A stretch of DNA of 64,000 bases from Octopus sinensis. Taxonomy: Eukaryota. The stretch is taken from the NCBI RefSeq assembly GCF_006345805.1, contig NW_021831850.1, positions 1 to 64,000 on the forward strand, written 5' to 3'. Positions 1,562 to 25,900 of the stretch are shown piece after piece (positions within the stretch are counted from its first letter, which is position 1; each line of letters starts with the position of its first letter). Made by a program: the position numbers and the translations under genes. The notes under the pieces are model-generated. The model was not told the origin of the DNA and ran no database searches. It saw only the letters and a list, made by a program, of their open reading frames with translations.

Positions 1562-1604
<43 letters not shown>

Positions 1605-1668
1605 AAGAAGTAGTAGTTGTAGTAGCAATAGTAGTAATAATAATATAGTAGTAGTAGTGGTGGTGGTG

Positions 1669-1711
<43 letters not shown>

Positions 1712-1890
1712 AGTAGTAGTAATGATAATGATAATGATAATTATAAAAATAATAATGATAATAATAATAATAATTATTATTATTTTTATTATTATTATTA
1801 TTATCATTCTTATTATTACTACTACTACTACTACTACTGCTACTACTATTATTATTAATATTATTATTACACGACATAAATTATTATTAT
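830..1890. repeat. Compound TAA/TAG/TTA/CTA microsatellite with polarity switches
   Basis: Directly visible; strand polarity changes near 950 and 1770. Confidence 0.95.
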
Positions 1891-3199: not shown

Positions 3200-3740
3200 T
3201 GAGCTGGCAGAAACGTTAGCACGCCGGGCTTAGCAGTAATTCGTCTGCCGTTACGTTCTGAGTTCAAATTCCGCCGAGGTCGACTTTGCCTTTCATCCTT
3301 TCGGGGTCGATTAAATAAATACCAGTTACGCACTGGGGTCAATGTAATCGACTGATCCGTTTGTCTGTCCTTGTTTGTCCTCTCTGTGTTTAGCCCCTTG
3401 TGGGTAGTAAAGAAATAGGTATTTCGTCTGTCTTTACGTTCTGAGTTCAAATTTCGCTGAGGTTAACTTTGCCTTTCATCCTTTCGGGACCGATAAAATA
3501 AGTACAGTTGAACACTGGGGTCGATATAATTGGCTCATCCCCTCCCCCCAAATTGCTACCATTGTGGAAAAATTTGAGGCCATTATTATTATTATTATTA
3601 TTATTAAGAAGGCGGCAAGCAGACAGAATCGTTAGCATTTTGGACGAAATGTTTAGTACCAGTGAAACACTGAGGTCGATGTGATCGACTAGTCCCTTCC
3701 CACCAAATTTCAGGCATCGTGCCTGAAGTAGAAAGGATTA
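3200..3740 (+). mobile_element. Cluster of SINE family B copies (one near complete, two partial)
   Basis: gagctggcagaaacgttagcacgccgggc...gttctgagttcaaattccgccgaggtcgactttgcctttcatcctttcggggtcgat repeated at ~3200, ~3420 and ~3610, and again at 9030-9330. Confidence 0.75.
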
Positions 3741-4784
3741 TTATTATTATTATGGTTGGATTCCCACCTGGGCCGTAGCAAGAAAGTCTACCCGCCACAC
3801 TTCTCGGTTCATCATCACTGCTTCGATGTCTGACACTGGCCACCTAAAGGCCGGCCATTAAGTGGCCGTAAGAGACTGTTAGGAAAAAGAGAGGAAAAAA
3901 GTATAAAGGAGAATGTTTCTGTTAAATCTGAGTGACTTCCATGAATCGGTTGATAATATTTATGGTTGTGAGGTCTTTGGAAATCCTGTTGTGCACTAAA
4001 AATTTGGAGGAGAGGAATGGGCAGAATATTCACATGGGTCAGTTTTGTTTCCTCATAACTTTCAGGAGAACGAGAAATTTTTAATGAAAATTTCGCCAAA
4101 TACCTTTCAGCGTGTGTAGACTATGATAATATCGGAATTTAATGTGAAAATAAAAATGGATGTGATAGGACGCATACATACTGATATTCGTCACATTTTG
4201 AGGGGTGGAGGCAACTATTTCTCGAAAATTCCCACAGTCTTTGACATTTTTGGAAATTTCAAGGTCAATCTAAATAAATGCCACGAGGCTTTTTATGCAA
4301 CCTGGAAAAATTCAGAGAAATTAACAGCAAATAATTTCAGATGGAAAAAGTCATTTTGTATGATGTCACGTACTTCACATTTTTGGGATTCGCTTCAAAA
4401 TATTCAACATAAATTCCAGGAAAGAAAAATGTAATATTTGCCCAAGTAGTCAAACTTTTCTGTGAAAAATAAATCAAAATAATTCTTGTAACTGTTAGAG
4501 CTTAGATATTTCATTTCTATCTGACTTTTAGTCACATCAGAATGCCCATTCTTGGATATTTACACAGAATGGTAAATAAGAAATGAGAGATGTGGAACCC
4601 TAAAACGGGAAGGCTACAAGTGTTTCTAAATAATCTGGCAATGAAGCGGCCAACGAGGGAAGCCGTGACATGCCAGAAATAGCAGTTAAATCTATCTCGG
4701 AAAACGTTACTGTCTTACGCATGAAACAATAAAGACTTCAACGTAGGGGACAGAAATGGTAGCCAAACCTTCCACTAAACATCC

Positions 4785-5075
4785 ATGACTGTCTGTCTGA
4801 CAGTCTATAAGCATGTACTTATGTATGCATGTGAGTATGCGTGTATGTATGTGCCTGTGTTTGTGTGTATGCGTGTATGCATGTTTGTGTGTACGTATGT
4901 GCGTTTGTGCGTGTGTGTTTATGTAGTATGTATGTATACATGTATGTATGTGTGTGTATGTATGTATGTATGTACGTATGTGTGTGTGTATGTATGTGTA
5001 TGTATGTATGTAAGTGTGTATGTGTATGTATGTGTGTGTATGTATGTATGCGTGTTTGTATGCATGCTATATGTG
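4785..5075. repeat. Degenerate (TATG)n/(TG)n microsatellite
   Basis: Directly visible. Confidence 0.9.
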
Positions 5076-5232
5076 GAACCTTCTGTAGTTGTATATGGAC
5101 AAAGGTTAGAAATTGTCACCAAATTCTTGTATCTGGGAAGTACTATGAGCACTTCTGGTCTTGATAATTAAATTCCATATAGAATTAGCAAATCTAGTGA
5201 TGCCTTTGATAGGCTTGACCAGTGTCTCTGGT
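5075..5232 (+). mobile_element. Small degraded LINE RT fragment (RTE-like)
   Basis: Translates as VYGQRLEIVTKFLYLGSTMS...*IPYRISKSSDAFDRL, matching the 'LEVV..F.YLGS...I..RI.KA..AF..L' region of RTE/CR1 RTs. Confidence 0.55.
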
Positions 5233-5825
5233 CCCCGTAACTTAGCGGCTCGGCAAAAGAGACCGATAGAATAAGTACTAGGCTTACAAAGAGTAAGTTC
5301 TGAGGTCGATTTATTCGACTAAAGGCGCTGCTCCAGCATGGCCAGTCAAATGACTGAAACAAGTAAAAGAATATATCTCCATTATAAATTGACAGACATA
5401 TACATACATATATACATACACACATACGTACGTATGCGTGTGTGTTGTATGTATGTCGTATATTCTTTTATTCTTTTACTTGTTTCAGTCATTTGACTGC
5501 GGCCATGCTGGAGCACCGCCTTTAGTGGAGCAAATCGACCCGGGACTTATTCTTTGTAAGCCCAGTACTTATTCTATCGGTCTCTTTTGCCGAACCGCGA
5601 AGTGACGGGGACGTAAACACACCAGCATCGGTTGTCAAGTAATGCACACACACACATATATACGACAGGCTTCTTTCAGTTTCCGTCTACCAAATCCACT
5701 CACAAGGCATTGGTCGGCCCGGGCCTATAGCAGAAGACACTTACCCAAGGTGCCATGCAGTGGGACTGAACCCGGGACCATGTGGTTGGTTAGCAAGCTA
5801 CTTACCACACAGCCACTCCTGCGCC
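5233..5825. mobile_element. Two SINE family A pieces in opposite orientation (tail + at 5233-5371; near-full copy - at 5462-5825)
   Basis: ccccgtaacttagcggctcggcaaaagagaccgatagaataagtact..., then its reverse complement followed by the tRNA-like head. Confidence 0.8.
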
Positions 5826-5919
5826 TATATGTACAGGAAGGTAAGTATACGTATGTTTGTGTGTGTTTAGCAAACAAAATTGTTGATTTCTTACAGATTT
5901 ATATTTGAAAAACTTACCC

Positions 5920-7975
5920 CAAGGAGAAATTACGATATAATATTTTTAACTAAATCTGTATCTTTAATAACACGATAATCATATCAGTAATTTCGTTCAT
6001 AGAAAGTATTTTTACGATATAAAAAGTCAGAAAATATATTATTGACATTTTTGTAAATCAAAAATTAGATTTTTCAATCGTTTCTCAAGAATTTTTTCTC
6101 TTTTTTCTTTTTGCTTCATCACTAAATAAATTTTTTTAAGGAAAGAACATCAAAGCAAACGTTCTAAACTCATTTAAAATGTCAACAAACATCAAAGATC
6201 AATTAATGTAATATAGTAGAATATTTTTCGATAAATTTAATAAATTAATTTACCTTGAAAGCCGAGTTTAGAAGGAGAATTGTGTGAGAAACGGCTGAAG
6301 CTGAGCGAAACTAGAGGAACCGATTCAATGGTCGTCTGCTGCTTGCAAAAGTTATCGTCTGCTCAGAAGGAAAAGACCGGCTCATTCCGGATAGTTTCGG
6401 TTCAACCAGTGTGTGTGCGTGTGAGTGTGTGTGCGTGTGTGTGTGTGTGTGTGTGCACGCGTGTGTGCATGTGTGAGCGCGTGCGTGCATGCATGTGCGT
6501 ATGAGAGAGAGAGAGAGTAAATATGTGTGCGCGCGTGCGTGTATGTGTGAGCGCGTGCGTACGTGTGAAAGAGTGTGCGCGCGTGCCTATATGTGTGAGC
6601 GCGTGCGTGCGTGTGTGAGAGAGAGAGTGTGTGTGTGTGCGTGAGTGTGCGCGCGTGTGTGTCATGGAGCACAGAGACGTATGAAACAAAGTAGGAGGAA
6701 ATGAGATGGTAAGAAAAGAACCGAGCCAATGGCCGTCTGTCTCCTGAGAAGGATATTATTTGTTTCGAAAGGGAAAACCGGGAAAGGTCCGGTTGTTTCT
6801 GGAAAGTTTTGATTTAACCATTGTATGTTTAATTCAGTGCGTATGTAACTGTGTCTATGTGTACGAGCGCGACGAGGCTACCTATCCGTCCATTGTAAAT
6901 AAATATAAGGCACAAAAAGAAAATGACTCCCCAGACACAACTAAATAAATGAAATCCTCTCAAAATTCAAAGGGTTGTGGGGTTTCAGAGAAGGGACCTC
7001 CAAATACTTACGGCTCTTCTTTTGACACTCCTGTCCCAGAGCCGATGCCCATTCACCAGAGCCGATGCCTTTTAGGCCCGGACAAAAAATGGTGAAAATA
7101 AAGTATCTACAAAATGACTGAAGTCAAAATATTAGACGACGACTTTTCATGTTAAACCTATGAAAGAAATCAAGAGTGAAATCAGAAAATCTGAGAACAG
7201 TGAATATATAAAAACTGTTTGTGGTCAGGTTTTCCTTTCCCACACACACATTTAGCTTCTTGTGTGCACAGGGACACTACATTTTTCCATATCTGTTAGC
7301 AATGCTTCCTTATTACAGTGTCTCTACCTTTCTATCTATCTTCCATTTTGTTTCCCTTCTACGTCTCAGCGCCATCACTCACATACACACATACATACTC
7401 ACACACACATAATGCATAAATATACACACTCACTCACGCATACATAGTCACACATATACACACATACATACTCACACATGCACACATACGTACTCACACA
7501 TACATACATATAAATACACACACATACATACTCACTCACACATACACACAGTGGTTGAACCGAAATTATCCGGAAACAGCCGAACTTTGCCCCTTTTTTC
7601 CCAAGAAGCAGACGACCGCTGAATCTGTTCTTCCAGTTTCGTTGAATTTCTGCTGCCAATTTTTAATTCTAAACTCGGCTTTCAAGGTAAACTAATTTAT
7701 TAAATTCATTGAAAATTATTCTACAATATTACATTAATTTCTCTTTGATATTTGTTGACATTTTAAATGATTTAGCAAGTTTCGTCTTCTCTTCTTCTTT
7801 CCTTAAAAATTTACTTTAAAAAGTGACTGAAAAATTAATTTTTCAAACAAAACTATCAAAGTTACAAAATAACTTCTTATATCGTATCATTATATGAATG
7901 AAATTACTTATATATATCGATCATAGTGTAAAAAAACAAATTTAATTTTAAAATATTGTTTTGTAATTTCTTTAA
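5920..7975. mobile_element. Foldback/long-TIR non-autonomous element (diverged inverted arms)
   Basis: 6161-6273 is the reverse complement of 7667-7775 (roughly 85% by eye); 6387-6416 pairs with 7545-7573. Outer arms (5920-6100 vs 7820-7975) are weakly similar. TG-rich (6410-6660) and CA-rich (7380-7550) tracts mirror each other. Confidence 0.6.
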
Positions 7976-7979
7976 AAGT

Positions 7980-8712
7980 TAGTTAGTTAGTTAGTTATTT
8001 AGTTAGTTAATTTGGCTCAAAAGCAAATAGCAAGGCCATGTAGGGGGACATGGAGTTAAGTACAGGGTGGTGTTCATGTAAAGAGTTCAGGCCACTTGAG
8101 GTCCAGGGAGGCTTTGAACAAAGCGGTCGTCGGCATCTTCACCATCTCGTCTGGCAGCTTGTTCCACGGATCCGCAACCCGGACGGAGAAAGCTCCTCTC
8201 CTTCGATTGAGATGAAATCGTCGCAGGTAGAGCTTTTCGGAATGACCCCGCAGCCGACGCTCTGGAGCAGGAGTGAAGAACAGCTCTTTCGAGAGGTTAC
8301 ACTTTCCGCTTATGATGTTGTGGGCGAGAATGAGATCACCACGGCGGCGGCGTTTTTCTAGAGAATAAAGGTCGAGCGTCCTCAGCCTTTCTTCGTAGGA
8401 CAAATTTTTGAGACCATGAACCATGCGGGTAGCCAGCCTCTGGACTCTTTCGAGATGCTGTATGTCTTTGAGGAGATAAGGAGAAGAGGCTTGAATCCCA
8501 TACTCCAATATGGGTCTCACCAGCGTGACATAGAGTGGTAGGAATATGGCTGCTGTGAGCATTCCGAATGACCGTCGAATCAAAAACAGAATTCCGCGCG
8601 CTTTGTTGGCAGCATGGACGCACTGGGCCGAAGGCGAAAAGGAGGAATCCACCAAGATACCCAGGTCCTTTACCTGATCGGTCCTCTCCAGCAGCAGACG
8701 ACCCGGAAGATT
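7980..8712 (-). mobile_element. 5'-truncated CR1-clade LINE 3' end with (TAAC)n tail
   Basis: Frame 8074-8712 reads ..VKDLGILVDSSFSPSAQC..AANKARGIL..IRRSF..LY.TLVRPILEY....SPY..KDI..LERVQR.ATRMV..L..LSYEERL..L.LYSLE.RR.RGDLI..RGHS.KL..F...FSVRV...WN.LP, the typical CR1 C-terminus. (ttag)n tail at 7980-8008 on the plus strand. Confidence 0.9.
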
Positions 8713-9029
8713 TTTACTTTCATCTCATTTCAAGATATAAAAGCTCCAAAACGAACAAAGATACACATTTTAGTCTGCTCTTCTATTTGTCCATGTCTGT
8801 TTATCCATCCAGTCCTCTCTTTTCCTCTATATCTACTTCTATACATTTATTTATCGACCTGTGTATCCCTTTACTTACAAATCGATTGATTGATGGAGAC
8901 AGAGAGTGAGAAAGTAGATAGAGACAAATAGACAGGCGAACCGGTTAGCAAAAGGGAATATCAGATGTGCCCAGTGGTTCTTGTGAGAAATGGCTAATGC
9001 AACGAGTGAAAGTCTGACGTTGTTATCAT

Positions 9030-9330
9030 AATTATCAAAAAGTAAAAACCAGTCAAGTGCTGAAGGTCGATATAATCGACTTGCCCCTCCCTTCAAAAAA
9101 CTGCTGGTCCTCTGCCAAAATCTGAAACCATTATATTTGTTATTAGAATCGTTAGCACACCAGACAAAAATGCTTCGTGGCATTTCGTCCGTCTTTATGT
9201 TCTGAGTTCAAATTCCGCCGAGATTGACTTTGCCTTTCATCCTTTTGGGAACGATAAAATAAGTGCCAGTGATAAACTGGGGTCGATGTAATCGACTAGC
9301 CCCTCCTCCCCTAAAATGTCAAACCGTATG
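9030..9330 (+). mobile_element. SINE family B fragments
   Basis: Same motifs as 3200-3740 (gttctgagttcaaattccgccgag...gcctttcatcc...ggggtcgatgtaatcgact). Confidence 0.7.
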
Positions 9331-9470
9331 CCTACAGTCGAAAGTATTATTTTGCAGAATCCTAATCTATGAAGCTAAAAACAGAGATTTGAAGAAACAA
9401 TGGGTTTTAGTGCTACGCGAAAATAATGGCCGCTCTAAGTGTTGTGTTTTCAAACACAATTTCATCCTAA

Positions 9471-9775
9471 GAACTAGAAGTATCGCTCGGCGTTGCTCGG
9501 GTTTGTTTTGACCCTTTAGAATTGGAATTTTTGAAAAGTAAAAACTTTGCATTATGTAGCTTGTTATTCTCTTTAAGTGAATATTTTTCTGGTTGAAATA
9601 TACCAAAAAATGGCGACACAGCAGTCAAAAAATCGTAAAAGATAGGGATTTTCATAGAAAAAAAGCACCTTTTTGATGTAAATAATTTTTGGTGTTAACA
9701 TGGTCCGATTTGAATTTTTCTTCTACGGAAGGAAGAGCAAGCCTTCTTCTATCATACAAATATATTTGTTAGTGT
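9471..9775 (+). mobile_element. Non-autonomous Helitron/Helentron-like fragment
   Basis: Starts aactagaagtatcgctcggcgttgctcgggtttg, resembling the ACTAG...CCCGGCGTTGCCCGG start of invertebrate Helentron-associated elements (recalled, not searched). Confidence 0.45.
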
Positions 9776-10487
9776 TAACACCATTGTAGGATAGAAAAAG
9801 AATATGTTTTAATTGATTATAGGTCCTAGATTAGCATTTAAGATGTTTTGGAAAGAAATTTTTGTCTGTATGAAAAATAACTTGTATTTCTTGTACAAAA
9901 AGTACTGTAGAATCAATCAGCTGAGTAGAGAAATGGCAGTTTATTAGCTGATAGTTTTATTTTTTTATTTTTACATTCTACTTTTTAAAAAACAAAAAGA
10001 CATCAAAGTCCAATACTTGGGTTTCTGTCGGATTCAAATTTACAAAAGTGTAGACATTGATGACGGGGCTGAAAATAGCAAATTTCAATTAATATGTCTG
10101 TGTAAATTTGGTATTGATTTGTGTATGTATGTATGTATGTGTGTGTGTGTGTGTGTGTGTGCATACATATAGTTTCCATATAAAAACATACACCTATATG
10201 CAGAAATATACAATCTTACATTTATAATGTTAAATAATGTCTGTGTGCGTGTGTGTGTGTGTGTATAATGTATGTATATACATTCAAATTCACATTTAAA
10301 AAAACACCTACATATACAATATAATCTAATGAATCTAAATCTGGATTGTTTAAAATCTTTAATAGTGTTTTGAAAATAAGTTTTAGATTCATTATCTGAA
10401 TGATATGCAGATGGCTGTAACCAGAATCTTCTGAGCACATCTGTATTATAAAGATGAATGTTAACCAGTGATTATGATGTGAATGGT

Positions 10488-10661
10488 TCAAGAAATAGTG
10501 ATGACTACTTTGTTGGGCCGTTTCAGCTGGCTTTCTCGTACCAATGCTGCTAACATGCTGTTTTCATTCATTAATAATTCAGAAGCTTTATCAAATTCCA
10601 CAATTCTACCTTGATCTAATACCATAACACGGTCATAATCATTTAGATGAGTCAGATGATG
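10488..10661 (-). CDS. ABCC8/9-like: ABCC/SUR-like transporter, last coding exon (H-loop, C-terminus)
   Basis: ctttccag|CAT CAT CTG; HHLTHLNDYDRVMVLDQGRIVEFDKASELLMNENSMLAALVRESQLKRPNKVVITIS*; 174 bp, phase 0. Confidence 0.9.
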   Translation of the reverse strand, partial: HHLTHLNDYDRVMVLDQGRIVEFDKASELLMNENSMLAALVRESQLKRPNKVVITIS

Positions 10662-10999
10662 CTGGAAAGTAAAGAAAACATCACATATAATGACAGAATT
10701 AAGAATCAAAAGGCATCTCCAATACCATAATACACCACACACACTTAGTGTTCCCACAATGCAATACTACACATCACCTTACGCAATATAACTCTATCCA
10801 CAATGTTGCCACAACATGTGTGCGTGCACACATATCACCTTTTATAATATATCTTAAAGGACCAAGATGCTTGACACCTCACTGTACTCAAGAGGGCCCA
10901 TACCCCACAGCAGAAGCAATAAGGCTGCTCCCTCTGGTTAAGATGATTTACCTGCAAGAGTCTTGTGCAGTACCACATAAAAACACCCAGCATATTCTG

Positions 11000-11150
11000 T
11001 AAAGTGGTTGGTGTTAGGAAGGTCATCCAGCTGTAGAAACCATAGCAAGTCAGACTGCAGTCTGGTGCAGTTCTCCAACTTGCCAGCTCTGGTCAAACCA
11101 TCCAATTCATGCCAGCAGGGAAAACAGACGTTAAATAACAATGATGATCT
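11000..11150 (+). mobile_element. RTE-type 3' tail fragment
   Basis: gtggttggtgttaggaaggtcatccagctgtagaaac...gacgttaaa...tgatgat is a diverged reverse complement of the RTE 3' end at 19020-19170. Confidence 0.7.
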
Positions 11151-11569
11151 TAACCCTACATAATACCCAGATTATTTGAAATTATCACGCTGTCCCTAAA
11201 CTTTGTGTCCCACCAGTAAATGATGGTCTCAGGTTAATGTTTCCATCTGTGAATCATTCCTTACCATTTTAGGAGCAACCTTCAGTTCTAAAGAGCTGCC
11301 TACACACAATTGAGTCTTTCAACTTGGAAGACAACATGGCTTCTGTTTGTTAACACTTAAGAATGAACAAGCTAATTTATCAACCAGGTACAGGAATTAC
11401 TATAATTAATGGGAGTGTGGAGAAGCAAAGGATAATTTAAGAATTGAATTAGAATTTAGTAACAATTGGTTAGTAAGAGGACTTAGTCTAAAATTCATTT
11501 GAAGGAGGAGAGATATAGTAAAATGTTTTTTTTATGAAGGAATAACATTTTTTCAAATCAATAGTGGAG

Positions 11570-11775
11570 GCATATGACTTAGTGGTTAGGGTGTTCGACT
11601 TATGATCTTGAGATTGTGGTTTCAGTTCCTGGTTTGGGGAACGTGTTGAGTTCTTGAACAAAGCACTTCACTTCACATTGCACTATTCCACTCAGCTAGA
11701 GAACGAGTAACCCTGCAATGGATTGGCATCCCATCCAGGGAGGAATGCATATGCCACAGAAACTGGGGAATCTGG
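11570..11775 (+). mobile_element. Old tRNA-headed SINE
   Basis: tagtggttagggtgttcgac...ggtttcagttcctgg (A/B-box-like head) followed by ttcttgaacaaagcacttcac...ccactcagct. Confidence 0.55.
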
Positions 11776-11795
11776 CCTCTTTAAAGAGTATTGTG

Positions 11796-11880
11796 GACTC
11801 ATCAATAAGGGATTGGATTCACAAATAAGGGGTTGGACTCACCAGTAAGGGGTTAGACGCACCAGTAGGGGGTTTGACTA
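11796..11880. repeat. Short ~20-bp minisatellite, about 4 copies
   Basis: ggactcatcaataagggatt / ggattcacaaataaggggtt / ggactcaccagtaaggggtt / agacgcaccagtagggggtt. Confidence 0.8.
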
Positions 11881-12215
11881 AAACTACAAGTCAATGGATT
11901 GGACACTTTTGCCAGCACAAATCCGTCTGCCCTGGATCAGCTGACATTCTGCATTTGAGAGCATTGTTGATTTACATTGCTGTGTTCAAATCTTACCTTT
12001 GCTGTGGTTTGAAGAAATACTTGTCAAGCTATACACAATGCCTCCAAATCTACACACACACACATACACATGCACAATGTAGGAGGCACTTACATATGCA
12101 CTAAGGAAATCTGAGTTATTTCAATGAATATATGTTTAAATAATTAGTTTTAAAATAAATTTAAGTTAATTCAATCCTTTAATATATTCAGGATTTGAAA
12201 ATAAAGTTCACTCAC

Positions 12216-12362
12216 CAAAGTCACAAGAACGGTGGAATCCCTGAACACAGTGCGGATGAGGTCCTGAATGGTTTCCTCCATCAAGGCATCATCGTTAGTG
12301 TGTTCCTGCTCCACAATAACTATTTTACTGTCTCTCATATAAGCTCGAGCAAAACAGAAAAG
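12216..12362 (-). CDS. ABCC8/9-like: ABCC/SUR-like transporter exon (Walker B/D-loop region)
   Basis: ttttacag|CTT...TTG|gtgagt; LFCFARAYMRDSKIVIVEQEHTNDDALMEETIQDLIRTVFRDSTVLVTL; 147 bp. Confidence 0.9.
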
Positions 12363-12556
12363 CTGTAAAAGAAACAAGGATTACATATATTTAAGTCACA
12401 CACATAATGAGGAAACTTTCCTAGGGAATCAAACACAATGACTGTACAAGGCTGGTTTTGAACATGCGATCTTGTGGTCAATTATTTAATCCAATACCTT
12501 CATGTAATAAACATCGGCTAAAGGAAATGAACAATTAAAACATTTGAAAATCTCAC

Positions 12557-12606
12557 CTGTCTTTGTCCAATAGTAAATTCCTTGCCTTCATGGAGGACAA
12601 CAGTTT
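12557..12606 (-). CDS. ABCC8/9-like: ABCC/SUR-like transporter exon (ABC signature)
   Basis: ctccacag|AA ACT...CAG|gtgaga; (E)TVVLHEGKEFTIGQRQ; 50 bp, phases fit both neighbours. Confidence 0.85.
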
Positions 12607-13389
12607 CTGTGGAGAGAAATATCACTGGTAAAAATAACCATATAAACGATAATTTCAACTGTTTGGGCACAAATTACAAGCTACATCTGACAGTGTTTAG
12701 GGTAACACAGATTAGAGGCTAGAGGTAAGTGTTTGAGATAACACAGATTATGGGTAATATAGCTTACAACATTTGGGGTAACACAGATTACAGAATTCAG
12801 ACAAAATAGTGTTCAATATTAAGGGCAACTTCGACTGTGTACTTCTGAGTGTCTCTTTGAAATGTTAAGCAGTTATACAGGAAATCCTAATTAACCACAT
12901 TGAAGGGGTCTCGTGGTTATAGCTGCTAAAGGAGAGTACCCAGATATAATATAAAGTGCTGACAGGGGCAGCCTTAACCTTGCAGAAACTGTGTGTGTCT
13001 GCATGCGCGCGCACACACACAATAAACACAGATAGGTTATTGTTTATTCTTCACCTAACTTGGAACCTTCCATGCATTTGGATCTGGAGTTTGTGCAGTG
13101 AGTGTACCCCCGTGTGACTTTGAATGCATACTGTGTATTCTGTAAGTACTTGTGTGTGTGTGCATAACTGGAAGGACAAATCCATATTTACTTTAGTAAG
13201 TATGTATATGTCAATATCCCCAACTCTACCTTGCTGCTTTTGCTATCTAAATACTCTGATTCCACCAAATCCTGAAAATTTTAATTCTATATAAATATAT
13301 ATATACAGATAGATGGGTGTGTTGTGATCGTGAGATAAATATTAGTATGGAATACCAAAAAAAGAAAAAAAAAAGTCTTTCTAATGACT

Positions 13390-13545
13390 ACAACTTGCAC
13401 TTGTTTTCGACACAATGATAGGTGCACCATGTACCCCATTCCATTATCCATTAGTGTTCTAAGTTCTTCATCAATCATAGCAGCATTGCATTTCATTAGT
13501 TTTGACCATGGTCTTGGAAGGACACTGCACAGTTCATCATGCCAT
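13390..13545 (-). mobile_element. Possible highly decayed Ty3/Gypsy RT N-terminal fragment
   Basis: PRPWSKL...AAMIDEELRTLMDNG, then (shifted frame) GAPIIVSK, resembling Gypsy 'RPVPYA...VDEEL.RL...G.I.....W.APIVVVKK'. Short and frameshifted. Confidence 0.3.
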
Positions 13546-14514
13546 GTGTCAATTTGGCTGGTGAGCAACCCTGGCTGCCTCAATCAATGCCTTTATTAAA
13601 CAGCAACTATTGTCTTATTTGTCAACTGAAATAAGGTTGCTACAGAGTTATTTACTGGTCATTTTCTGCAATTTGAGTGAGCTTCAAGAGATGCTAGGGA
13701 CTTAGTGAGGGTCCAGGTTTCTCATCCATAAAAAAAAGATTGCTGCAACTATGAAAATTCATTGGCTGTAAGTCCAGATAGGCTTCATTTCATTGGATTT
13801 ACTTTCTAGCTAAGGCCTCTGTGTATTTTGCTGTCCATTTATGTTCTTGCTACTAGTGAACTGTGGTCAGTTAATTATCAGGACACAAAAACCAATTGAA
13901 TGGTTTCAACAGAGAGAAAATTGACCTACATTCATAAGGCAACTATGTTCACCAAACCCATTTCTTCTCTATAAGTTGAACCAGTTACCAATGAGTTCTG
14001 CAATGGCTTTTTAAGACCAATGAGGGAATTCTACCTGCTAGAAATAACAGCCAAATCTCCCCTCCAATTACACCCTAACATGTGAACAAAAGAAAAGTAC
14101 ATTAATATTATAACAGACCTCTCTATGAAGATCGTGATTTGAACAACTAAGATAAAGGTTGACCTGGGGCTAAACAACAACACCAGATGTAAGCTTCCCT
14201 GTCTACCTTTGGTTTAATGTCCAAATTAATGAAATTCCTCTGAGTAACGAACTGCTGACTGAGAATAATAACAGGAAACCCTTCAGAATGTGTTACATTC
14301 AATCAACATATTTAAGTGTCAAAGTAGTTTAAAATGTCTTCTCAGAGATCTTAATCAGGTTAATCAGCTGTTGAAAGTATATGTAAGATCAGTTTGGAGT
14401 TTACCTATGAGGGTCAGTTTGACATTATATATAACAAAAGGAAGGTGTGTGTGTGTGATTATTGATGTGTCAAGCAATGGCAATCCTAAAAATACAACAT
14501 CTCTATCAACATAC

Positions 14515-14618
14515 CCAGTTTATGGGGAAGCTCTTGAACTGTGCTTTTCATTTGAACTGCATTCAAAGCTTCCCAAATCTCTGGATCTTTATATATGCCT
14601 TCTGGATCGAGATTGAAC
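14515..14618 (-). CDS. ABCC8/9-like: ABCC/SUR-like transporter exon (FNLDP region)
   Basis: ttttcag|G TTC...CTG G|gtatgt; (R)FNLDPEGIYKDPEIWEALNAVQMKSTVQELPHKL; 104 bp. Confidence 0.9.
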
Positions 14619-15220
14619 CTGAAAAACAAAACATTTCCGATATCGGCATTAACTGACTCTCTTTATGTTTGCTTGGTTTTAGTTTAATACAGGTTTACTT
14701 GATATACAAATTCATAGATTTACACAAGTTGTTCAAACTGTTATTTTAATAAAATTTGATAAAGCTTCATTTGAGTAGAAGCTTAACTGTGTCTTAAGTT
14801 TAAAGTGACAGGCTAGATGTATCTGGCATATTTGAGCTACGACATTTGGCCAGTTATTTCTGTATCTACTTCAACACAGTTTCAAATTCCAGAGTCTATT
14901 CATACCTCAACCCTGAACCTCAGTGGTTTTATACTCACCTCTGATAAAGTATGTATTTCTACAGCAACAAATCAATCGGTTAGTAATCTGCCACTCTATC
15001 CAATTTAGCAGTTCGTCTCTTTAGCTAATTTACTATTTACTCCTAAAGTATTACTCAAAGAAGATTAAAATTTTTGTGAAAAGCTGAACAACTGCAAATG
15101 TAAACACAGATTCCATTTGGTCCACATCACAGTTTTACAATGATAGATACAATTTATAGAGACAGACAACATGTTGAGTTTGGAATAATGTAGATTTGAA
15201 ATGATGAATGAGAAACTCAC

Positions 15221-15408
15221 CTGACTGTTCCGTCAAACATGATTGGGTCGTGGGGTACAATGGAAAGACGAGATCTCAGAACTTGGGACGGCACAACTGA
15301 TATGTCCTGATAGTTTATCAAGATCTTTCCTTCATGTACATGGATCATCTTGAATAAGGATAAGATGAGAGATGATCGCCCACTCCCAGCATGTCCACAG
15401 AAGGCCAC
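15221..15408 (-). CDS. ABCC8/9-like: ABCC/SUR-like transporter exon (NBD2 Walker A, Q-loop)
   Basis: ttcaag|GTG...GTC AG|gtgagt; VAFCGHAGSGRSSLILSLFKMIHVHEGKILINYQDISVVPSQVLRSRLSIVPHDPIMFDGTV(R); 188 bp. Confidence 0.92.
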
Positions 15409-16216
15409 CTTGAAATATAGAAAAACAACAAACTGCTGTGTAACTGGCAGCAATAGAAGGAACACACACAACCACTGCCACCATGACTAACCACCTCTAG
15501 ACTAGTCATCATCCCAGCACTAACATTACTAAATATAACCATCAACATCTTCAGCATCACTCCACCTTTGCATAACATACACAAACCAACAAAAGAGCTG
15601 ATGTGTGGTCACGTGACCAGCTAGATAGGGGTAATGTCACATGACCAGCTAGATAGGGTAATGTCACATGATCATGTGATTGACCAAATTACTGAATGTT
15701 ATACATCACTGGTCACAATGCACCTCGCATTGTTTTAGCTTTCGAATTATGATCGGAAGGCTCGTCCATCATGGGGTTATTCATTTACAATTGTATAGAC
15801 TAGAGCAATATGAAATGAAGTGTTCCTAATCTGGGAATTGAACCCACTACCTAGCAATTGTAAGTGCAACACCCTAACCACTAGCTCACATACCCTCACA
15901 GATATAGTAATATAATCTTCGTGAAATAACACACTACCATCAAGACATACATTATTTCTGAAAAAAAAAAATGACAGGTGGAACATCTTTGATCAAAAGT
16001 TTGTTTGATCAGGGTTATATATATATCGCATATCCCACAATATTACCAGACAAAGCTTTAAGCTATCCACCATCTTTACAGTAAGTCCTTCTCTACCAGT
16101 TCTTGCTAGATGTATGGAGAGGAATCACTCCCAAAGAAATGATCAGTTATTACCACAGCGTAAGTCTGTAATTAACCACCTCTACCATCACCATCACAAA
16201 CAACAAGATTTGTTAC

Positions 16217-16347
16217 CTTTTCCGCATCTTTTATAGTAAAAGTGGCATCCATAACAGTGGGGCTCTGTTCAGGATCATAGTTTAAGGCAATATGTTGAAA
16301 TTCAATGTCACCAACATCTGGCCAAGACTCAGGTACCTCAATGCAAT
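16217..16347 (-). CDS. ABCC8/9-like: ABCC/SUR-like transporter exon (start of NBD2)
   Basis: ttacag|AT TGC...AAG|gtaaca; CIEVPESWPDVGDIEFQHIALNYDPEQSPTVMDATFTIKDAEK, matching the ABCC 'P..WP..G.I.F......Y......L....F.I...EK' motif; 131 bp. Confidence 0.9.
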
Positions 16348-16559
16348 CTGTAATATAAAGACAAAAGCGAAATAACATTTTAGAATAAAGGCAAGTTAGA
16401 TACTAAACTCTAATTTAAAAAAATACATAATTAATCTATTTGACTAAAATAGCATTTCTACTTTGCAAACAATAATTTAGGGAAGGAGTTTTGTAGGAGT
16501 ATTGCTACATTCCATTGACAATATATAATCTGCTTCACAAATCCCTACAAATAACCGAC

Positions 16560-17860
16560 CTTCCCTAATTATCCAATTTATATTCGATTTAAAGAAATGG
16601 ACTGAAGAAAATCTATGTCCACCTGATGAAACTCTCCAAGTAGAAGAGTATCAATAGTTGGCTCTTCTGATACTATTAAATTCTCAAACAAAATCTCTTT
16701 TTAGAAGCTATTTAATCCTACCAACTTGCACAGCACATACAACTGTATTGCCTTCTGATGATAAGACAGTCAAATGTTTCAACTCAAATGTCTTAGTTTT
16801 GCTCTTACAAATAATGTTGCATGTTTCCAACATGGATAATCTTATTTATGTGATGTGAAATGTGGTGTCATCACATCAGCATCATTTTTTTTGTTTTTTT
16901 GTTTCCCATGTTGACATAAATTGCGCAAGATACCCAAACCCTACCAATTGTCAGTGGGTGATATATGGGGACTTTTAAGATGGTTAATTTTCTCTGGAGC
17001 AACAAAGTGGATACACCAAATATCCATGCTTTTTATGTAGGTGGAACGGCAGAGGGAAAAACATTGGCTGATCAAAGAATGACCACAGTGAAGATTAGTT
17101 CCAGGATCTTTTAATGTCGTTGAAAAGCCTTTTTAGTTCAACCGGGAAAAATCATCCTACCTCCACTCCATATCAAACTTGGCATTTGTTAGAATTCAGG
17201 ATAAAGATGGAACTTTCACTATTTATGCAGCAGATTTCCGAATCTGAGAAGTGAAAGATAAAAGCTGACATATTTTGATGGATCTCAAATCAGAAAATTA
17301 GTGAAAGATGGGAACTTTGTAAATTCAATGAATTGCACTGAAGCATCAATTTGGAATTCATTTGTAATAGCTGTAAAAGAATTTCTGGGCAACAAGTAAG
17401 CAGCCAACTGTACCGAAATAGTCAACAACAAGCTAGAGAACTTGCAAAAGTTAGGAGCAAAATATGATCATAAGGCTGCACTATCTCCACAGTGACTTTG
17501 ATGAATTCCCTGAAAATCTTGGTGACACAAATAGGGAAGATATTCCTATCAGGACATAAAAATCAATGGAATAATGGTGGATGGCACTTGCATATGATGG
17601 TGGACTATTGCTGGAACTTAGTTCAAGATCTCCCTCAAGTTCAGCACTCAAGAAAATCATCCAAACTACAAATTCATGGGTAATTAGACATAAACAATGA
17701 TGTAATTTGTCTATATGGATTTAAAGACTTTTACTAGATTTTCAACTGAATTTTAAGAAAGCATTCTGGTTTTGATGTGATGGTAATAAGTGGATATAAT
17801 TATCAGATTCCATATCTCAAAAAACCCCTAGTTCAGGTCCAAAATTTTTGACAAGAGATA
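16560..17860 (+). pseudogene. Decayed DNA transposase fossil (Chapaev3/CMC-like assignment tentative)
   Basis: Frameshifted motifs KMVNFL.EQQSGYTKYPCFLC (~16980-17035), PLHIKLG (17163-17183), DGSQIRKLVKD (~17277), EFLGNK, LHYLHS, FPENLG, MMVDYCW (~17594). Confidence 0.7.
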
Positions 17861-19014: not shown

Positions 19015-20820
19015 TCATCATCATCGTTTAACGTCCGTTCTCCGTGCTAGCACGGGTTGGACGGTTCGACGGGGGTCTAGGAAGCCAGGGGCTGCACCAG
19101 GCTCCAGTCTGATCTGGCAGTGTTTCTACAGCTGGATGCCCTTCCTAACGCCAACCACTCCGCGAGTGTAGTGGGTGCTTTTTACGTGCCACCGGCACAG
19201 GTGCCAGGGGAGTCTGGCATCATCCACGATCGGTTGGTGCTTTTAACGTGCCACCGGCACGGAAGCCAGTCAAGGTGGCGCTGGCATCGGCCACGTTCGG
19301 ATGGTGCTTTTTATGTGCCACCGACACAGGTATCACAATTACTATTTCCATTGATATTTATTTCGATGTTCATGTACTTGAATCAATAGGTCTCCTCAAG
19401 CACAGCGGGATGTTCTGGTATCCAAGGTACTTTGAATGGGCAGGGGCTATGCGGGACTGGTGCAGGAAGCAGCCCGGGTCTTTGCAGTCACAGCATATCT
19501 CCAGAGATCTCGGTCCTTCGCCATTGCGTCAGTGAGGCCCAATGCTCTGAGGTCATGCTTGACTACCTCATCCCATGTCTTCCTGGGTCTTCCTCTCCCC
19601 CTAATACCTTCAACTGTTTGGGAGCGGCACTTCTTCACACATCTCTCCTCATCCATCTGCAGTACATGACCATACCATCACAAGCGTTGCTCTTGCACAC
19701 CACATTTGATGCTTCTTATGTCCAGCATTTCTCTCAGGGTGCTTACCCTCTGTCGTGCACGCACACTGACATTACACAACCAGCGGATCATGCTAGCTTC
19801 ATTCTTTTCAAGTCTACGCATGTCCTCTGCAGTCACAGCCCATGTTTCACTACCGTGAAACATGGCAGTTTGCACACATGCATCATACAATCTACCTTTC
19901 ACTCTGAGCGAGAGACCCTTTGTCGCCAGTAGGGGTAGGAGCTTTCTAAACTTTGCCCAGGCTATTCGTATTCTAGTGGTGACACTCTCTGAGCATCCAC
20001 CTCCACTACTAACTTGGTCACCCAGGTAGCGGAAACTATCAACTACTTCTAGTTTCTCCTCCTGGAGTGTGATGGAATCTGTTTTCTGAGTATCTGTGGT
20101 GTCTATTGTCCCTGTGCATCTGCCGCACATGAAAGCTATCTTATCAGTTAATTTCCCTTTGATGTTGCTGCACCTCTTATGCGTCCATAGCTTACACTGG
20201 GTACATCTTATGGAGTTTCTACCTACGACTTTCCTACAGATCGAGCAGGGCCACCTGCCCGAGGGGGTGTGTGCTGAGTTCGCCTTTCTGCTCACTATAA
20301 CTTTGGTCTTTGCTACATTTACTCTAAGGCCCTTTGATTCTAACCCTTGCTTCCACACCCGCAATTTCTTTTCTAGTTCCGGTAGTGATTCTGCTATGAG
20401 AGCCAGGTCATCAGCATAGAGGAGCTCCCAGGGGCAACCTGCTTTGAATTCCTCTGTTATTGCCTGGAGGACTATGATGAATAAAAGGGGACTGAGGGCT
20501 GAGCCTTGGTGTACACCTACTTCTACCCGGAATTTTTCACTATATTCGTTGCCAATTCTAACCTTGCTAACAGCCTCTCTATATAGGGCCTGTACAGCCC
20601 TTATTAGCCATTCATCAATCTCCAGTTTCCACATCGACCACCAGATAAGGGATCGGGGGACCCTGTCAAAGGCTTTCTCCAAGTCCACAAAAGCTACGTA
20701 GAGGGGTTTATCTTTAGCTAGGTATTTCTCCTGCAGTTGTCGGACCAGGAATATAGCATCAGTGGTGCTTCTACCTGGCACAAAACCGAACTGCATCTCA
20801 TCTAAGCAAATTCTCTCCCG
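19011..20820 (-). mobile_element. 5'-truncated RTE-clade LINE (RT with embedded PHD-like finger), one in-frame TGA
   Basis: QFGFVPGRSTTDAIF, FVDLEKAFDRVPR, GVHQGSALSPLLF, LLYADD, FRYLG, RGRGRPRKTW. TGA at 19678-19680 is in frame with the downstream ORF 19447-19656. (CAT)n tail on the plus strand at 19011-19025. Confidence 0.92.
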
Positions 20821-21055
20821 TGTGTGTGTATGTGTGTGTGTGTGTGTATGTGTGTCTGTGTTTGTCCCCCTAGCATTGCTTGACAACCGATGCTGGTGTG
20901 TTTATGTCCCCGTCACTTAGCGGTTTGGCAAAAGAGACCGATAGAATAGGTACTGGGCTTACAAAGAATGAGTCCCGGGGTCGAGTTACTCGATTAAAGG
21001 CGGTGCTCCAGCATGGCCGCAGTCAAATGACTGAAACAAGTAAAAGAGTAGAGAG
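20821..21055 (+). mobile_element. SINE family A internal (TG)n plus tail, 3' half of the split SINE
   Basis: tgtgtg...cttgacaaccgatgctggtgtgtttatgtccccg...cagtcaaatgactgaaacaagtaaaagag. Confidence 0.8.
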
Positions 21056-21845: not shown

Positions 21846-22999
21846 AAACATTACAATTTTATTCACGTTAATGACAAAACTAAACCCACAATAAGGGATT
21901 TGTAAACTATGCATATTTAGTCCAAACAGCACTAACCAGGCAATGAGTCTATGATGTAATGTCAAATGATACAGTGGGGAGGGGGGTTCTCCAAAGGGAT
22001 TTAGTGTTGGTAGGGGTTGTGTGGGCGATGGAGCATTTTTTGGTCAATAGTAGGGCGATATTGCAATTTGGCACGAAAGGTTTAGGAAACACTGCTTTGG
22101 GGTCCGGAACTGTAAAATAATTAAAATTACATCTAGCACACACATATATTCAAGATGTTGTTAGTGTAGCTTGTTCCAGACAGAATTACTGGCTCTCTAT
22201 ACAGATGTGCCCCACAAAGAAACATCTATGTGGCCACTCAACTACCTGGAAGCAGGAGCTAAATCTCTCTCAGGTCACAGCCAACTATCTTGAAACACAT
22301 TAGATGTTGTAGTGCCAAGGTACATTGTGGCTGAATAAAAGACAAAATGGTGACAGCTAGATCACATTTCTGTATCGTTTGTTGGATTAAGGGGTGGGAT
22401 TAGTGGGGGCTGAACAGCACTCACATTATACTACATCCTACCATCATAACATCACAACCAGATATACACATGCATATAATTGCAACTTTAATGTTAGACA
22501 AGATACTTATCTTCTTCCAATCCATCATCCTCAAGACTATTTTCTGTCATTACAGACATCTATGATACCTGACGACTAATTGGTATCCCAAGGTTTGACT
22601 GAAACACAAATATATACCGGTAATATACAAGAGTTTAATCACACAACACACAAGAAATACGTGTGCGTGTGTATATGCATGTAGACATATATTGTAAACG
22701 CAGCTATGTTGAGGTATGTGTATATGTTTTTTTTGCATGTATATGTGTGTGTAGAGGTAGGGGTATGTGTGTGTCAACAGTTCAAATTTCATTTCAGATA
22801 TGGGGTTGTGCCTTTGACTAAGATACAGGAGTAAATTTTCCTAGACAGGCAAACTGAGCAAACAAGAAAATCCACGTTTCCCGTAGGTGCTTCTACACAG
22901 TTGCTCAATCTATCGGAAATGGCAGAAAAATCTGCCTCACATCACACTCTACTGTCTCACAGAATAATATAGTGGATAAAATAATACTTTGTTTAGTCA

Positions 23000-25900
23000 A
23001 ACATAGCCAACATGAACACACAGAATCACACCGACAAATGGGGCTAACACCAACACATGGATATAACACCGAAACGGATTAACACCAACACATGGGGATA
23101 ACACAAAAACAGGGACTAACACCAACACATGGGGCTGACACCAACACATGGAGCCAACACCAAAAGAGGGACTAACACAAACACATCGGGCTAACACCAA
23201 CACATCGGGCTAACACTAAAACAGGGACTAACACAAACACATGGGGGCAAAACAAACACATGGGGCTACCACTAACACATGAAGCTAACATCAAAACGGA
23301 ATAACACCAAAAGATGGGGCTAACACCAACACATAGGGCGCACACCAACACATGGGGCTAACACCAAAACAGGGAATAAAACCAAGGCATGGGGCTAACA
23401 CCAACACATAGGGCTAACACCAAAACAGGGACTAACACAAACACATGGGGCTAACACCAAAACAGGGACTAACACAAACACATAGGGCTAACACCAAAAC
23501 AGGGACTAACACAAACACATAGGGCTAACACCAAAACAGAGACTAACACAAACACATGGGGCTAACACCAAAACAGGGACTACCAACAACACATGCAGCT
23601 AACAACAAAACAGGGAATTACACCAAAACAGGGACTAACACAAACACATGGGGCTACCATCAACACATAGGGCTAACATCAAAACGGACTAACACCAACA
23701 CATGGGGCTAACACTAAAACAGGGACTAAGCCCAACACATGGGTCTAACACCAACACATGGGGCTAACACCAAAACAGGGATTAATACCAACACATAGGT
23801 CAAACACCAAAACAGGGACTAACACCAACACATGAGGCTAACATCAAAACGGACTAACATCAAAACGGACTAACATCAAAACGGACTAACACCAACACAT
23901 GGGGCTAACACTAAAACAGGGACTAAGCCCAACACATGGGGCTAACACCAACAAATGGGGCTAACACCTCAACAGGGACTAATATCAAAACATGGGCTAA
24001 CACCAAAACAAGGACTAACACCAACACATGGGTCTAACACCAAAACAGGGACTAAAACCAAGGCATGGGGATAACACCGACACATGGGGCTAACATAAAT
24101 ACATGGAGATAACACCAAAACATGAGGCTAAAACCAATACATAAGGATAACACCAAAACGGACTAACAGCAAAACAGGGACTAACACCAACACATGGGGT
24201 TAACACCAAAAAAAGGGACTAACAACAACACAAGGGGATAACACCAAAATATGGACTACCACCAACACAGGGGGCTAAAACCAAAACAGGGACTACCACC
24301 AACACATGGGGCTAACACCAAAACAGGGACTAACACCAACACATGGGGATAACACCAACACATTGAGATACCACCAAAACAGGGACAAACACCAACACAG
24401 GGACAAACACCAACACATAGGGCTAACACCAACACATGGGCTAACACCAAAACAGGGACTAACACAAAATAAATGGGGATAACACGAAAACAGGGACTAA
24501 CACCAACACATGGGGCTAACACTAAAACAGGGACTAACACCAACACATAGGGCTAACACCAACACATGGGGCTAACACTAAAACAGAGACTAACACCAAC
24601 ACATAAGGCTAACACTAAAACAGGGGCTAACACCAACACATGGGGATAACACAAAAACAGGGATTAACACCAAAACATGGACGAACACCAACACATGGCA
24701 CTAACACCGAAACAGGGACTACCACCGACACATGGGCTAACACCAAAACAGGAACTAACACCAAGATATGGGGCTAACACCAACACATGGGGCAAACACC
24801 GAAACGGACTAACACCAACACATGGGGATAAAACCAACACATGGGGAAAACACCAAAACTGGGACTAACACAAACACATGGGGATACAACCAAGACAGGG
24901 ACAAACACCAACACATCGGGCTAACGCAAAAACAGGGACTAACACCAACAATGGGGCTGACACCAACACATGGGGCCAACACCAAAAGAGGGACTAACAC
25001 CAACATATCGGGCTAACACAAACACATGGGACTAACACCAACACATGGGGCCAACACCAACACATGGGGATAACACCAACACATGGGGCTAACATCCAAA
25101 CGGACTAACACCAACACATGGGGCTAACACGAAAACAGGGACTAAGCCCAACACATGGGACTAACACCAACACATGGGGCTAACACCAAAACAGGGACTA
25201 ACACCAAAACATGGGGCTAACACCAACACATGGGGCTAACATAAAAACAGGGACGAAAACCAACACATGGGCTAACACCAAAACAGGGACTAACACCAAA
25301 AGGGGGAATAACACCAAAAGAAGGACTAACACCAACACATGGGGCTAACAGCAAAACAGGGACTAACACCAACACATGGGGTTAACACCAACACATGGGG
25401 ATAACACCAACACATGAGGCTAACACCAACACATGGTGATAACACCAAAACAGGGACTAACACCAACACATGGGCTAACATCAACACATGGGGATAACAC
25501 CAAGACATGTGGCTAAAACAAATACATAAGGATAACACCGAAACAGGGAATAACACCAAAACAGGGATAACACCAACACATGGGTATAGCACTAAACAGG
25601 GACTAACACCAACATATGGGGCTAACACCAGAACAGGGCTAACACCAACACATGGGGATAACACCGACACATGGGGATAACACCAACACATGGGACTAAC
25701 AACCAACACATTGGACTAACACCAACACATGGGGCTAACACCAACACATGGGCATAACATCAACACATGGGGATAACACCAACACATGAGGCTAACACCA
25801 ACACATGGTGATAATACCAAAACAGGGACTAACACCAACACATGGGGCTAACACCAAAAAAGGGACTAACACCAACACGGGCCTAACACTAAAACAGGAA

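Follow-up and report, generated by a model that had tools for sequence, protein, structure and literature searches.

Six exons on the minus strand (16347-10488) of a 64-kb stretch of the Octopus sinensis genome (hereafter, the window: the first 64 kb of unplaced contig VCDQ01006077.1) encode the second nucleotide-binding domain (NBD2) of an ABCC-family protein that belongs with the sulfonylurea receptors (SURs). The reading we favor, with a probability of about 0.64, is that this is NBD2 of a cephalopod SUR in which the normally catalytic ATP site has been remodelled, so that the protein is hydrolysis-dead and probably serves as a nucleotide-binding regulatory subunit, and that the window itself holds a truncated second copy of the gene. 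The case rests on the motifs of the domain, on their presence in all six cephalopod sequences compared and their absence from all other SURs sampled, and on the strong constraint that followed.

The NBD2 exons, their motifs, and the family

The six exons, with an AG acceptor at each and a GT donor at all five internal junctions, join in consistent reading phases into a stop-free, 263-aa ABC domain, just as proposed in the first-pass annotation that was made from the letters alone. The product matches the Pfam model ABC_tran (PF00005) with 63.4 bits, against a cutoff of 25, and its AlphaFold2 (AF2) model, built with a 45-sequence alignment, has a predicted local distance difference test score (pLDDT) of 92.1 and is matched by Foldseek to NBD2 of SUR2B with a template modelling (TM) score of 0.90 and a root-mean-square deviation of 1.4 Å; a model from the single sequence, with a pLDDT of 32.6, was discarded in favor of the alignment-based one. 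Walker A reads GHAGSGRSS (15396-15370), with Arg in place of Lys (CGA at 15378-15376); the Q-loop reads IVPHDP (15261-15244), with His in place of Gln (CAC at 15252-15250); Walker B reads IVIVEQ (12323-12306), where Asp is replaced by Glu (GAG) and, next to it, the catalytic Glu by Gln (CAG); the D-loop HTNDD follows (12302-12288), and the H-loop His is kept (CAT at 10661-10659). The five catalytic positions, namely, Walker A Lys, Q-loop Gln, Walker B Asp, catalytic Glu, and H-loop His, are thus occupied by R, H, E, Q, and H, and the codons CGA, GAG, and CAG are as the first pass had them. Its argument on adenosine-to-inosine editing is sound as well: such editing would turn CGA into CGG (Arg), GAG into GGG (Gly), CAG into CGG (Arg), and CAC into CGC (Arg), and cannot restore Lys, Asp, Glu, or Gln.

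The statement that the domain had lost essentially every catalytic motif is overstated: the changes are all conservative, and cephalopod NBD2 has an intact pocket scaffold, which includes the Gly and Ser residues of the P-loop, the Tyr of the A-loop, and the Asp and His of the D-loop and H-loop, respectively. The signature, FTIGQRQ (12577-12557), had been listed among the losses erroneously: FS/TxGQRQ is the normal form in NBD2 of SURs (FSVGQRQ being the SUR norm), and the motif belongs to site 1, which is already degenerate. By fold and descent, the domain is a member of the ABC ATPase family, yet its motifs do not predict an ATPase.

SURs are long ABCC proteins with the layout TMD0-L0-TMD1-NBD1-TMD2-NBD2 (TMD, transmembrane domain). 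When 1.84 billion cluster representatives were searched exhaustively with HMMER and NBD2 as the query, one near-identical full-length protein was recovered, the ‘ABCC9-like’ protein of Argonauta hians (P0029, 1760 aa). A follow-up search added ‘ABCC9-like’ proteins of about 1740-1810 aa from three Octopus species (O. sinensis, O. vulgaris, and O. bimaculoides), one cluster from cuttlefish and one from a second decapodiform, and a 301-aa O. sinensis ‘ABCC8-like’ protein; a word-indexed protein search with the same query returned matches of ~40% identity only and missed these orthologues. The complete O. sinensis gene spans 86 kb on scaffold CM016883.1, and its longest annotated isoform (P0256, 1805 aa, ‘ABCC9-like’) was taken as the full-length reference. 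This protein scores 925.9 bits against SUR2 and 913.6 against SUR1 compared to 557.8 against MRP1 (for the oyster orthologue, 1145 for SUR and 843 for MRP1), whereas NBD2 alone discriminates weakly (248 vs 234 bits). In the TMD0-L0 region, residues 29-330 align end to end with residues 3-308 of SUR2 (214 bits, E 2e-62), compared to 25 bits for TMD0 of MRP1, so that the SUR affiliation suggested in the first pass is upheld. In the structures of ATP-sensitive K+ (KATP) channels, TMD0-L0 is the module that contacts Kir6.x.

In a neighbor-joining tree (1394 columns, 200 bootstraps, distance method only), the SUR clade as opposed to MRP-type outgroups, all molluscs including cephalopods, and the cephalopods themselves are each supported by 200/200 replicates, and the cephalopods sit on a stem of roughly double the length seen in other molluscs (root-to-tip distances of 0.91-0.94 vs about 0.5). 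The cephalopod proteins nest within the molluscan SUR clade as an orthologue, and a search with oyster SUR as the query matched no cephalopod proteins other than these clusters, although the search tool is one that misses relatives. The earlier label of a paralogue is thus not supported, and the protein is best read as the cephalopod SUR (ABCC8/9) orthologue rather than an extra family member.

An ABC dimer sandwiches each ATP between Walker A and Walker B from one NBD and the signature motif contributed by its partner. We compared six cephalopod sequences, from O. sinensis, O. bimaculoides, O. vulgaris, Argonauta, the cuttlefish cluster, and the second decapodiform. All six share the NBD2 motifs GHAGSGRSS, PHDP, IVIVEQEHTN(D/E)D, and TLHHL, and in all six NBD1 has changed as well, with the signature LSGGQ turned into LTEGQ, the D-loop SALD into S(K/T)(I/M)E, and the H-loop His lost; NBD1 keeps a canonical Walker A (GxxGxGK[ST]) and Q-loop. 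Nucleotide-binding site 1 (NBS1) retains its ancestral degeneracy, with D-D in Walker B of NBD1 and FS/TxGQ as the NBD2 signature. More than 30 non-cephalopod proteins of the SUR clade (from bivalves, gastropods, an annelid, a brachiopod, starfish, shark, and krill) are canonical at all these positions, and among the 150 closest 50%-cluster representatives out of 1.84 billion proteins, the cephalopod cluster is the only one to depart from K/Q/D/E, all others with data (148/148) being canonical. Such a motif pattern is not due to chance. In ABCC proteins, NBS1 is where the non-canonical motifs gather, and ATP is hydrolyzed at NBS2 (PMC7756269), in agreement with the background given in the first pass; the cephalopod changes, therefore, strike both halves of the normally catalytic site. 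Judging by the motifs, the cephalopod protein has the degenerate NBS1 that is typical of SURs and lacks a canonical, Mg-nucleotide-handling NBS2, the site being non-canonical on both halves.

Burst, stasis, and the state of site 2

The changes came early and were then held. Among the alignment columns that are invariant in four outgroups, the proportion that is fixed for a different residue in all cephalopods is highest in NBD2 (32/104), compared to 5/51 in TMD0-L0, 13/69 in TMD1, 15/86 in NBD1, and 18/66 in TMD2, and the fixed differences of NBD2 concentrate in Walker A, the Q-loop, Walker B with the D-loop, and the H-loop region. Within cephalopods, NBD2 is 85% identical between Octopus and cuttlefish, has the lowest nonsynonymous rate (dN) of all domains in 5 of 7 species pairs (cuttlefish with the second decapodiform, and four octopod-decapodiform pairs), and is among the lowest in the two octopod pairs. 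The ratio of nonsynonymous to synonymous rates (dN/dS) of NBD2 is 0.079 between O. sinensis and O. bimaculoides (10 synonymous and 3 nonsynonymous differences; 0.065 for the whole gene) and 0.019 between cuttlefish and the second decapodiform (0.046 for the whole gene). The two decapodiform sequences are Logan contigs from SRR23936180 and SRR27666064, which are 5.5-6.5 kb long, intronless, and contain complete open reading frames (ORFs) of 1728 and 1735 aa, and hence represent spliced transcripts. The comparison of orthologues that the first pass had called for thus finds identical substitutions in six sequences at a dN/dS of 0.02-0.08, so that there is no pseudogene decay at the level of the family. 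The replacement residues have been frozen under strong purifying selection since the cephalopod stem, by which we mean the time before the octopod-decapodiform split, and such a burst, with stasis after it, marks a shift in function, not a loss.

What the remodelled site does at present is a separate matter. The main rival to our reading, which we consider unlikely, holds that NBD2 is a structural relic whose site 2 binds no nucleotide and which is conserved only for folding, for contact with the coupling helices of TMD2, and for contact with NBD1, nucleotide sensing being left to site 1 or to the partner channel. Several points speak for this possibility: the NBD1 signature has acquired an acidic Glu (LTEGQ) that faces the position of the gamma-phosphate, His has taken the place of the Q-loop Gln, a residue that takes part in holding Mg2+, the K->R change together with the signature Glu could weaken binding or dimer closure, and Walker A of NBD1, with its Lys intact, as well as its Q-loop remain canonical. 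However, the lining of an empty pocket should drift, whereas R, H, E, Q, and their neighbors are identical in the six octopod and decapodiform sequences; each substitution is the chemically nearest alternative to the residue it replaced; the scaffold residues enumerated above are invariant; and NBD2 is among the slowest domains of the protein, and the very slowest in 5/7 pairs.

At the opposite extreme, site 2 could still be catalytic, whether slowly or by an altered mechanism, with the Walker B Glu, the Q-loop His, and the H-loop His forming a new catalytic or metal-binding arrangement or with another nucleotide or metal as the substrate or cofactor. Glu, two His, and Arg indeed line the site, the coordinated and conserved change of both halves resembles re-engineering rather than decay, and degenerate ABC sites with Walker B changes may keep very slow hydrolysis (PMC7756269). 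Nevertheless, we regard this as improbable given that E->Q alone blocks turnover sufficiently to trap the ATP-bound state in those ABCCs in which it has been introduced, as in Ycf1 E1435Q, MRP4 E1202Q, MRP2 E1462Q, and plant ABCC2 E1404Q, the structures of which are among the Foldseek matches of the domain in the PDB. Substitution of Gln for the catalytic Glu is the change routinely made to trap ATP, both K->R and D->E bring the ATPase activity of ABC proteins down further, and we know of no natural precedent for a catalytic set of this kind.

The window copy and its surroundings

The exons described above are intact in the window, and the gene around them is not (Table 1). Megablast aligns the window with the 3' part of the complete gene on CM016883.1, at an identity that varies along the ~28 kb collinear stretch (94 / 99 / 97.7 / 96.4 / 94.4%, with further indels). 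The 3' flank (2600-9757) is collinear at about 92-94%, with an extra 3.3-kb indel; the NBD2 block (9754-16864), introns included, is 99.03% identical, a divergence of about 0.7%; upstream of a 14.5-kb deletion, collinearity resumes at 97.7, 96.4, and then 94.4%, and homology stops at 28023, within a 19-bp satellite that both loci contain. A mosaic of this kind is suggestive of gene conversion or of a recombinant haplotype, rather than of divergence at an even rate.

Table 1. Features of the 64-kb window (strand is relative to the forward strand of the contig)
Feature	Position	Strand	Remarks
NBD2 exon 1	16217..16347	-	phase-1 start; A-loop Tyr at 16279-16277
NBD2 exon 2	15221..15408	-	Walker A and Q-loop
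NBD2 exon 3	14515..14618	-	FNLDPEG..., helical subdomain
NBD2 exon 4	12557..12606	-	signature FTIGQRQ
NBD2 exon 5	12216..12362	-	Walker B and D-loop
NBD2 exon 6	10488..10661	-	H-loop His; stop TGA 10490-10488
Block collinear with 3' part of full-length gene on CM016883.1	9754..28023	-	megablast
Deletion junction, 14.5 kb	16864..16866		megablast against chromosomal gene; missing part corresponds to L004 68538-83020
Artificial first exon (MLETCNIICK...) of XP_029654666.1	16722..16833	-	NCBI model; ATG at 16833
NBD1-TMD2 linker exon remnant (SNLGIPISRQVS*MSVMTENSLEDDGLEED)	22511..22598	-	lone upstream exon left in window copy
LINE-type element	19678-20886	-	402-aa ORF
19-bp-unit satellite	23028-28009		about 270 copies
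Candidate Penelope-like element	40790-42958	+	722-aa ORF
22-bp-unit satellite	43780-49238		about 240 copies
Array of similar 22-bp unit	53673-54181		reverse orientation
TAA/TAG-type trinucleotide repeat	49326-58942 and 975-1721		imperfect
Apparent non-LTR retrotransposon	59312-62581	-	ORFs of 639 and 431 aa
~95-bp dispersed repeat	5661-5759, 30176-30273, 33172-33266, 36539-36636, 37080-37344, 38618-38704		both orientations

The segment that is absent from the window copy holds every TMD2 exon, and the junction, at 16865, is clean, with one additional base and no long repeat. The only parts of the window that match orthologues are the six NBD2 exons and the remnant of the NBD1-TMD2 linker exon, which carries two lesions, a CAG->TAG stop at 22562-22560 and a GT->AT donor at 22510-22509; the chromosomal copy and every orthologue keep both the CAG and the GT. 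No TMD exons were found upstream in the window in six-frame ORF lists or with distant metagenomic homologues, which the deletion explains. A candidate for the end of TMD2 picked by eye at 17720-17484 (VVWMIFLSAELEGDL) has no match among the orthologues and is a chance resemblance. The intact spliced ORF of the first pass, therefore, stands as far as the six exons go, whereas the locus as a functional gene does not, with its TMD2 exons missing and its linker exon broken. What the window holds is a truncated and disabled second copy, an ordinary broken one, and not the working gene; in origin, it may be a segmental duplicate that has degenerated, a null haplotype or defective haplotig, or an assembly product.

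In the coding sequence of NBD2, the sole difference from the chromosome is ACT (Thr) in place of GTT (Val) at 16258-16256, a change of two adjacent bases. The exons of the window copy are, accordingly, intact because of recent divergence (~0.7%), not selection. Two exonic differences compare to ~6 expected from a Poisson estimate that uses the non-exonic mismatch rate of the block; the shortfall is not significant, and nothing follows from it on selection acting on this copy. The annotated protein XP_029654666.1 (P0261), the 301-aa ‘ABCC8-like’ product recovered in the searches, sits on VCDQ01006077.1 at the coordinates of the window and carries the window-specific Thr. Its first exon has no counterpart among the orthologues and lies, in the direction of the gene, just downstream of the deletion junction. 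This entry is the truncated duplicate or haplotig and should be excluded from inventories of O. sinensis ABC genes.

One could still imagine that the truncated copy is expressed as a soluble pseudo-NBD2, in the form of the 301-aa model, and modulates the full-length SUR or other ABC proteins. NCBI annotates such a product, with an upstream ATG exon, the six exons and their splice sites are intact, and the NBD2 block is diverged by 0.7% compared to about 3-6% in the flanks. This seems very unlikely, considering that the proposed first exon, besides lacking orthologous counterparts, is located at a deletion scar, that the low divergence extends to the introns and so speaks for recent origin or gene conversion rather than selection on a protein, and that the deficit of exonic differences is not significant. 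Least credible of all is that the motif changes are themselves the decay of a young pseudogene: the window copy does have the TAG, the lost donor, the 14.5-kb TMD2 deletion, and the unique Val->Thr change, but it differs from the chromosome in NBD2 by two adjacent bases only, so that no motif change arose there, and the intact chromosomal gene shares these motif residues with O. bimaculoides, O. vulgaris, Argonauta, cuttlefish, and the second decapodiform. In addition, dN/dS is 0.02-0.08, and full-length transcripts exist for the two decapodiforms.

The remainder of the window is rich in repeats. The LINE-type element, which is intronic and present at the chromosomal locus too, has an open ORF in which a reverse transcriptase domain scores 95 bits and the PHD finger is matched weakly. 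In the candidate Penelope-like element, the reverse transcriptase scores above the Pfam cutoff and the GIY-YIG nuclease falls below it (21.5 bits, cutoff 22.6); these two domains are the pair that Penelope-like retroelements carry, and their ORF seems to be intact. The third element comprises adjacent ORFs, the longer one with reverse transcriptase and a weak zf-RVT match and the shorter one with no Pfam match, and looks like a nearly intact retrotransposon without long terminal repeats (non-LTR). The 19-bp satellite, which also scored at periods of 37 and 56 bp, is common to an intron of the chromosomal gene (L004 54527-62580). The 22-bp satellite gives rise to spurious Lys/Arg/Glu-rich ORFs of 450-600 aa on the minus strand, and the short array of a similar unit lies 4.4 kb beyond it. 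The trinucleotide repeat extends over nearly 10 kb, with a GC content of about 18-24% and strong GC skew, and yields many long, low-complexity ORFs in all frames. The dispersed ~95-bp repeat matches the Argonauta hians locus at 80-90% (L001 14990-15082, 41231-41330, and 75853-75947), and is a SINE-like element common to octopod genera. ARAGORN found no tRNA genes in the 64-kb window. Outside the window, the NBD1-TMD2 linker of P0256 (residues about 1160-1200) is Asp/Glu-rich (...EDDGLEEDDLLPLDDY...EQDNEEEE...) and is alternatively spliced among the annotated isoforms; it is reminiscent of the acidic ‘ED domain’ in vertebrate SUR2.

A SUR predicted to lack hydrolysis, and comparison with known ABC systems

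The evolutionary scenario that we propose starts with the consensus site 2, which would have been remodelled on both halves on the cephalopod stem, through K->R, Q->H, D->E, and E->Q in NBD2 and through LTEGQ, the D-loop, and the H-loop in NBD1. With site 1 already degenerate, this leaves a protein without a hydrolysis-competent site, and we infer that the cephalopod SUR does not hydrolyze ATP. The rebuilt site 2 probably still binds nucleotide without turnover, as in engineered E->Q traps. The protein would then act as a non-catalytic regulatory subunit that docks onto its partner, presumably, by homology, an inward-rectifier K+ channel, via the highly conserved TMD0-L0. The role of a scaffold or channel regulator that the first pass had suggested gains in plausibility from the strong conservation of this module. 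More tentatively, and with considerable doubt, one may go further and suppose that the only SUR of coleoids is hydrolysis-dead, in which case its partner would respond either to the mere occupancy of the sites by nucleotide or to a re-specified ligand or metal bound at R/H/E/Q.

Several considerations weigh against our main reading. Both the loss of hydrolysis and the retention of nucleotide binding are read from sequence, and the combination of Walker A K->R with a Glu in the NBD1 signature could abolish ATP binding or dimerization of the NBDs at site 2. No Kir6-type partner came to light, although no search was aimed at one. Octopod-decapodiform comparisons have a saturated synonymous rate (dS), which restricts the dN/dS ratios to the closer pairs, and the stem was defined with octopods and decapodiforms as the cephalopods sampled. 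A canonical second SUR was not found in cephalopods with the oyster SUR as the query, in a word-indexed search that is known to miss many relatives. Finally, the window copy may be a true paralogue, a null allele, or an assembly product; its flanks are about 3-6% diverged, yet its NBD2 block is only 0.7% diverged.

To our knowledge, in every ABCC studied, NBD2 supplies the sole working ATPase site. In a full-text search of the literature, we found no report on a cephalopod SUR/ABCC9 or on an ABCC whose NBD2 is degenerate; the gene is already annotated as ‘ABCC9-like’ in public databases, and what appears to be unreported is a natural SUR that is predicted to be hydrolysis-dead. In vertebrate SUR1, activation by Mg-nucleotides is impaired when the Walker A Lys or the Walker B Asp of NBS2 is mutated (PMC4699857), whereas the strict need for hydrolysis in SUR signaling is still debated (PMC4699857; PMC3114383). 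The cephalopod SUR bears directly on this question: if our reading is correct, it is a natural experiment on whether SUR signaling needs hydrolysis at NBS2 or only the binding of Mg-nucleotide.

Vertebrate SUR1/ABCC8 and SUR2/ABCC9, the regulatory subunits of KATP channels, resemble the cephalopod protein in architecture, as the best full-length match, in TMD0-L0, in the degenerate site 1 (D-D in NBD1 Walker B and FSxGQ in NBD2), in the acidic stretch of the NBD1-TMD2 linker, and in the fold of NBD2. They differ in that their NBD2 is canonical (GRTGSGKSS / PQDP / (L/M)DEATA(S/A)(I/V)D) and hydrolyzes MgATP, where the cephalopods have R, H, and E-Q, and in that their NBD1 signature is LSGGQ, not LTEGQ. 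The SURs of other molluscs and lophotrochozoans (oyster, scallop, mussel, abalone, Aplysia, Owenia, and Lingula, annotated as ‘ABCC9/ABCC8-like’) belong to the same orthologous clade and are 37% identical to the cephalopod proteins over the full length, with TMD0-L0 reaching 49% in the comparison with oyster. Unlike the cephalopod proteins, they are canonical at every motif of NBD1 and NBD2, and the divergence of the latter is apparent also from overall identity, 41% between cephalopod and oyster NBD2 compared to 54% between oyster and Lingula. In arthropods, the SUR homologue (Drosophila Sur, Tetranychus tetur11g05990) has a TMD0, and its physiological role is unclear (PMC3724490); the single arthropod sequence sampled, from krill, keeps the canonical Lys, Gln, and Asp-Glu in NBD2, again in contrast to cephalopods.

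The closest parallel to the predicted state of site 2 comes from the laboratory. Engineered E->Q mutants of ABCCs (Ycf1, MRP4, and MRP2, as well as the equivalents in CFTR and MRP1) have the identical substitution at the catalytic position of NBD2, and these mutants bind ATP and close the NBD dimer without turnover (PMC7756269). In the mutants, however, this is a single change in an otherwise canonical site, whereas in the cephalopod SUR it is natural and ancient and comes together with K->R, Q->H, D->E, and an altered signature in the partner domain. The closest natural parallels are the degenerate ABC sites of ABCC NBS1, CFTR, TAP1/2, Pdr5, and ABCG5/G8, non-catalytic ATP sites that have been retained for regulation and that include the replacement of Walker A Lys by Arg in ABCG5/G8 and the change of all motifs of one site in Pdr5 (PMC7756269). 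CFTR, TAP1/2, Pdr5, and ABCG5/G8 all keep one catalytic site, whereas in the cephalopod SUR it is the usual catalytic site that has been altered, and neither of the two looks competent. The cephalopod SUR, then, would seem to lay out a route by which a consensus ABC site can turn into a second non-catalytic one.

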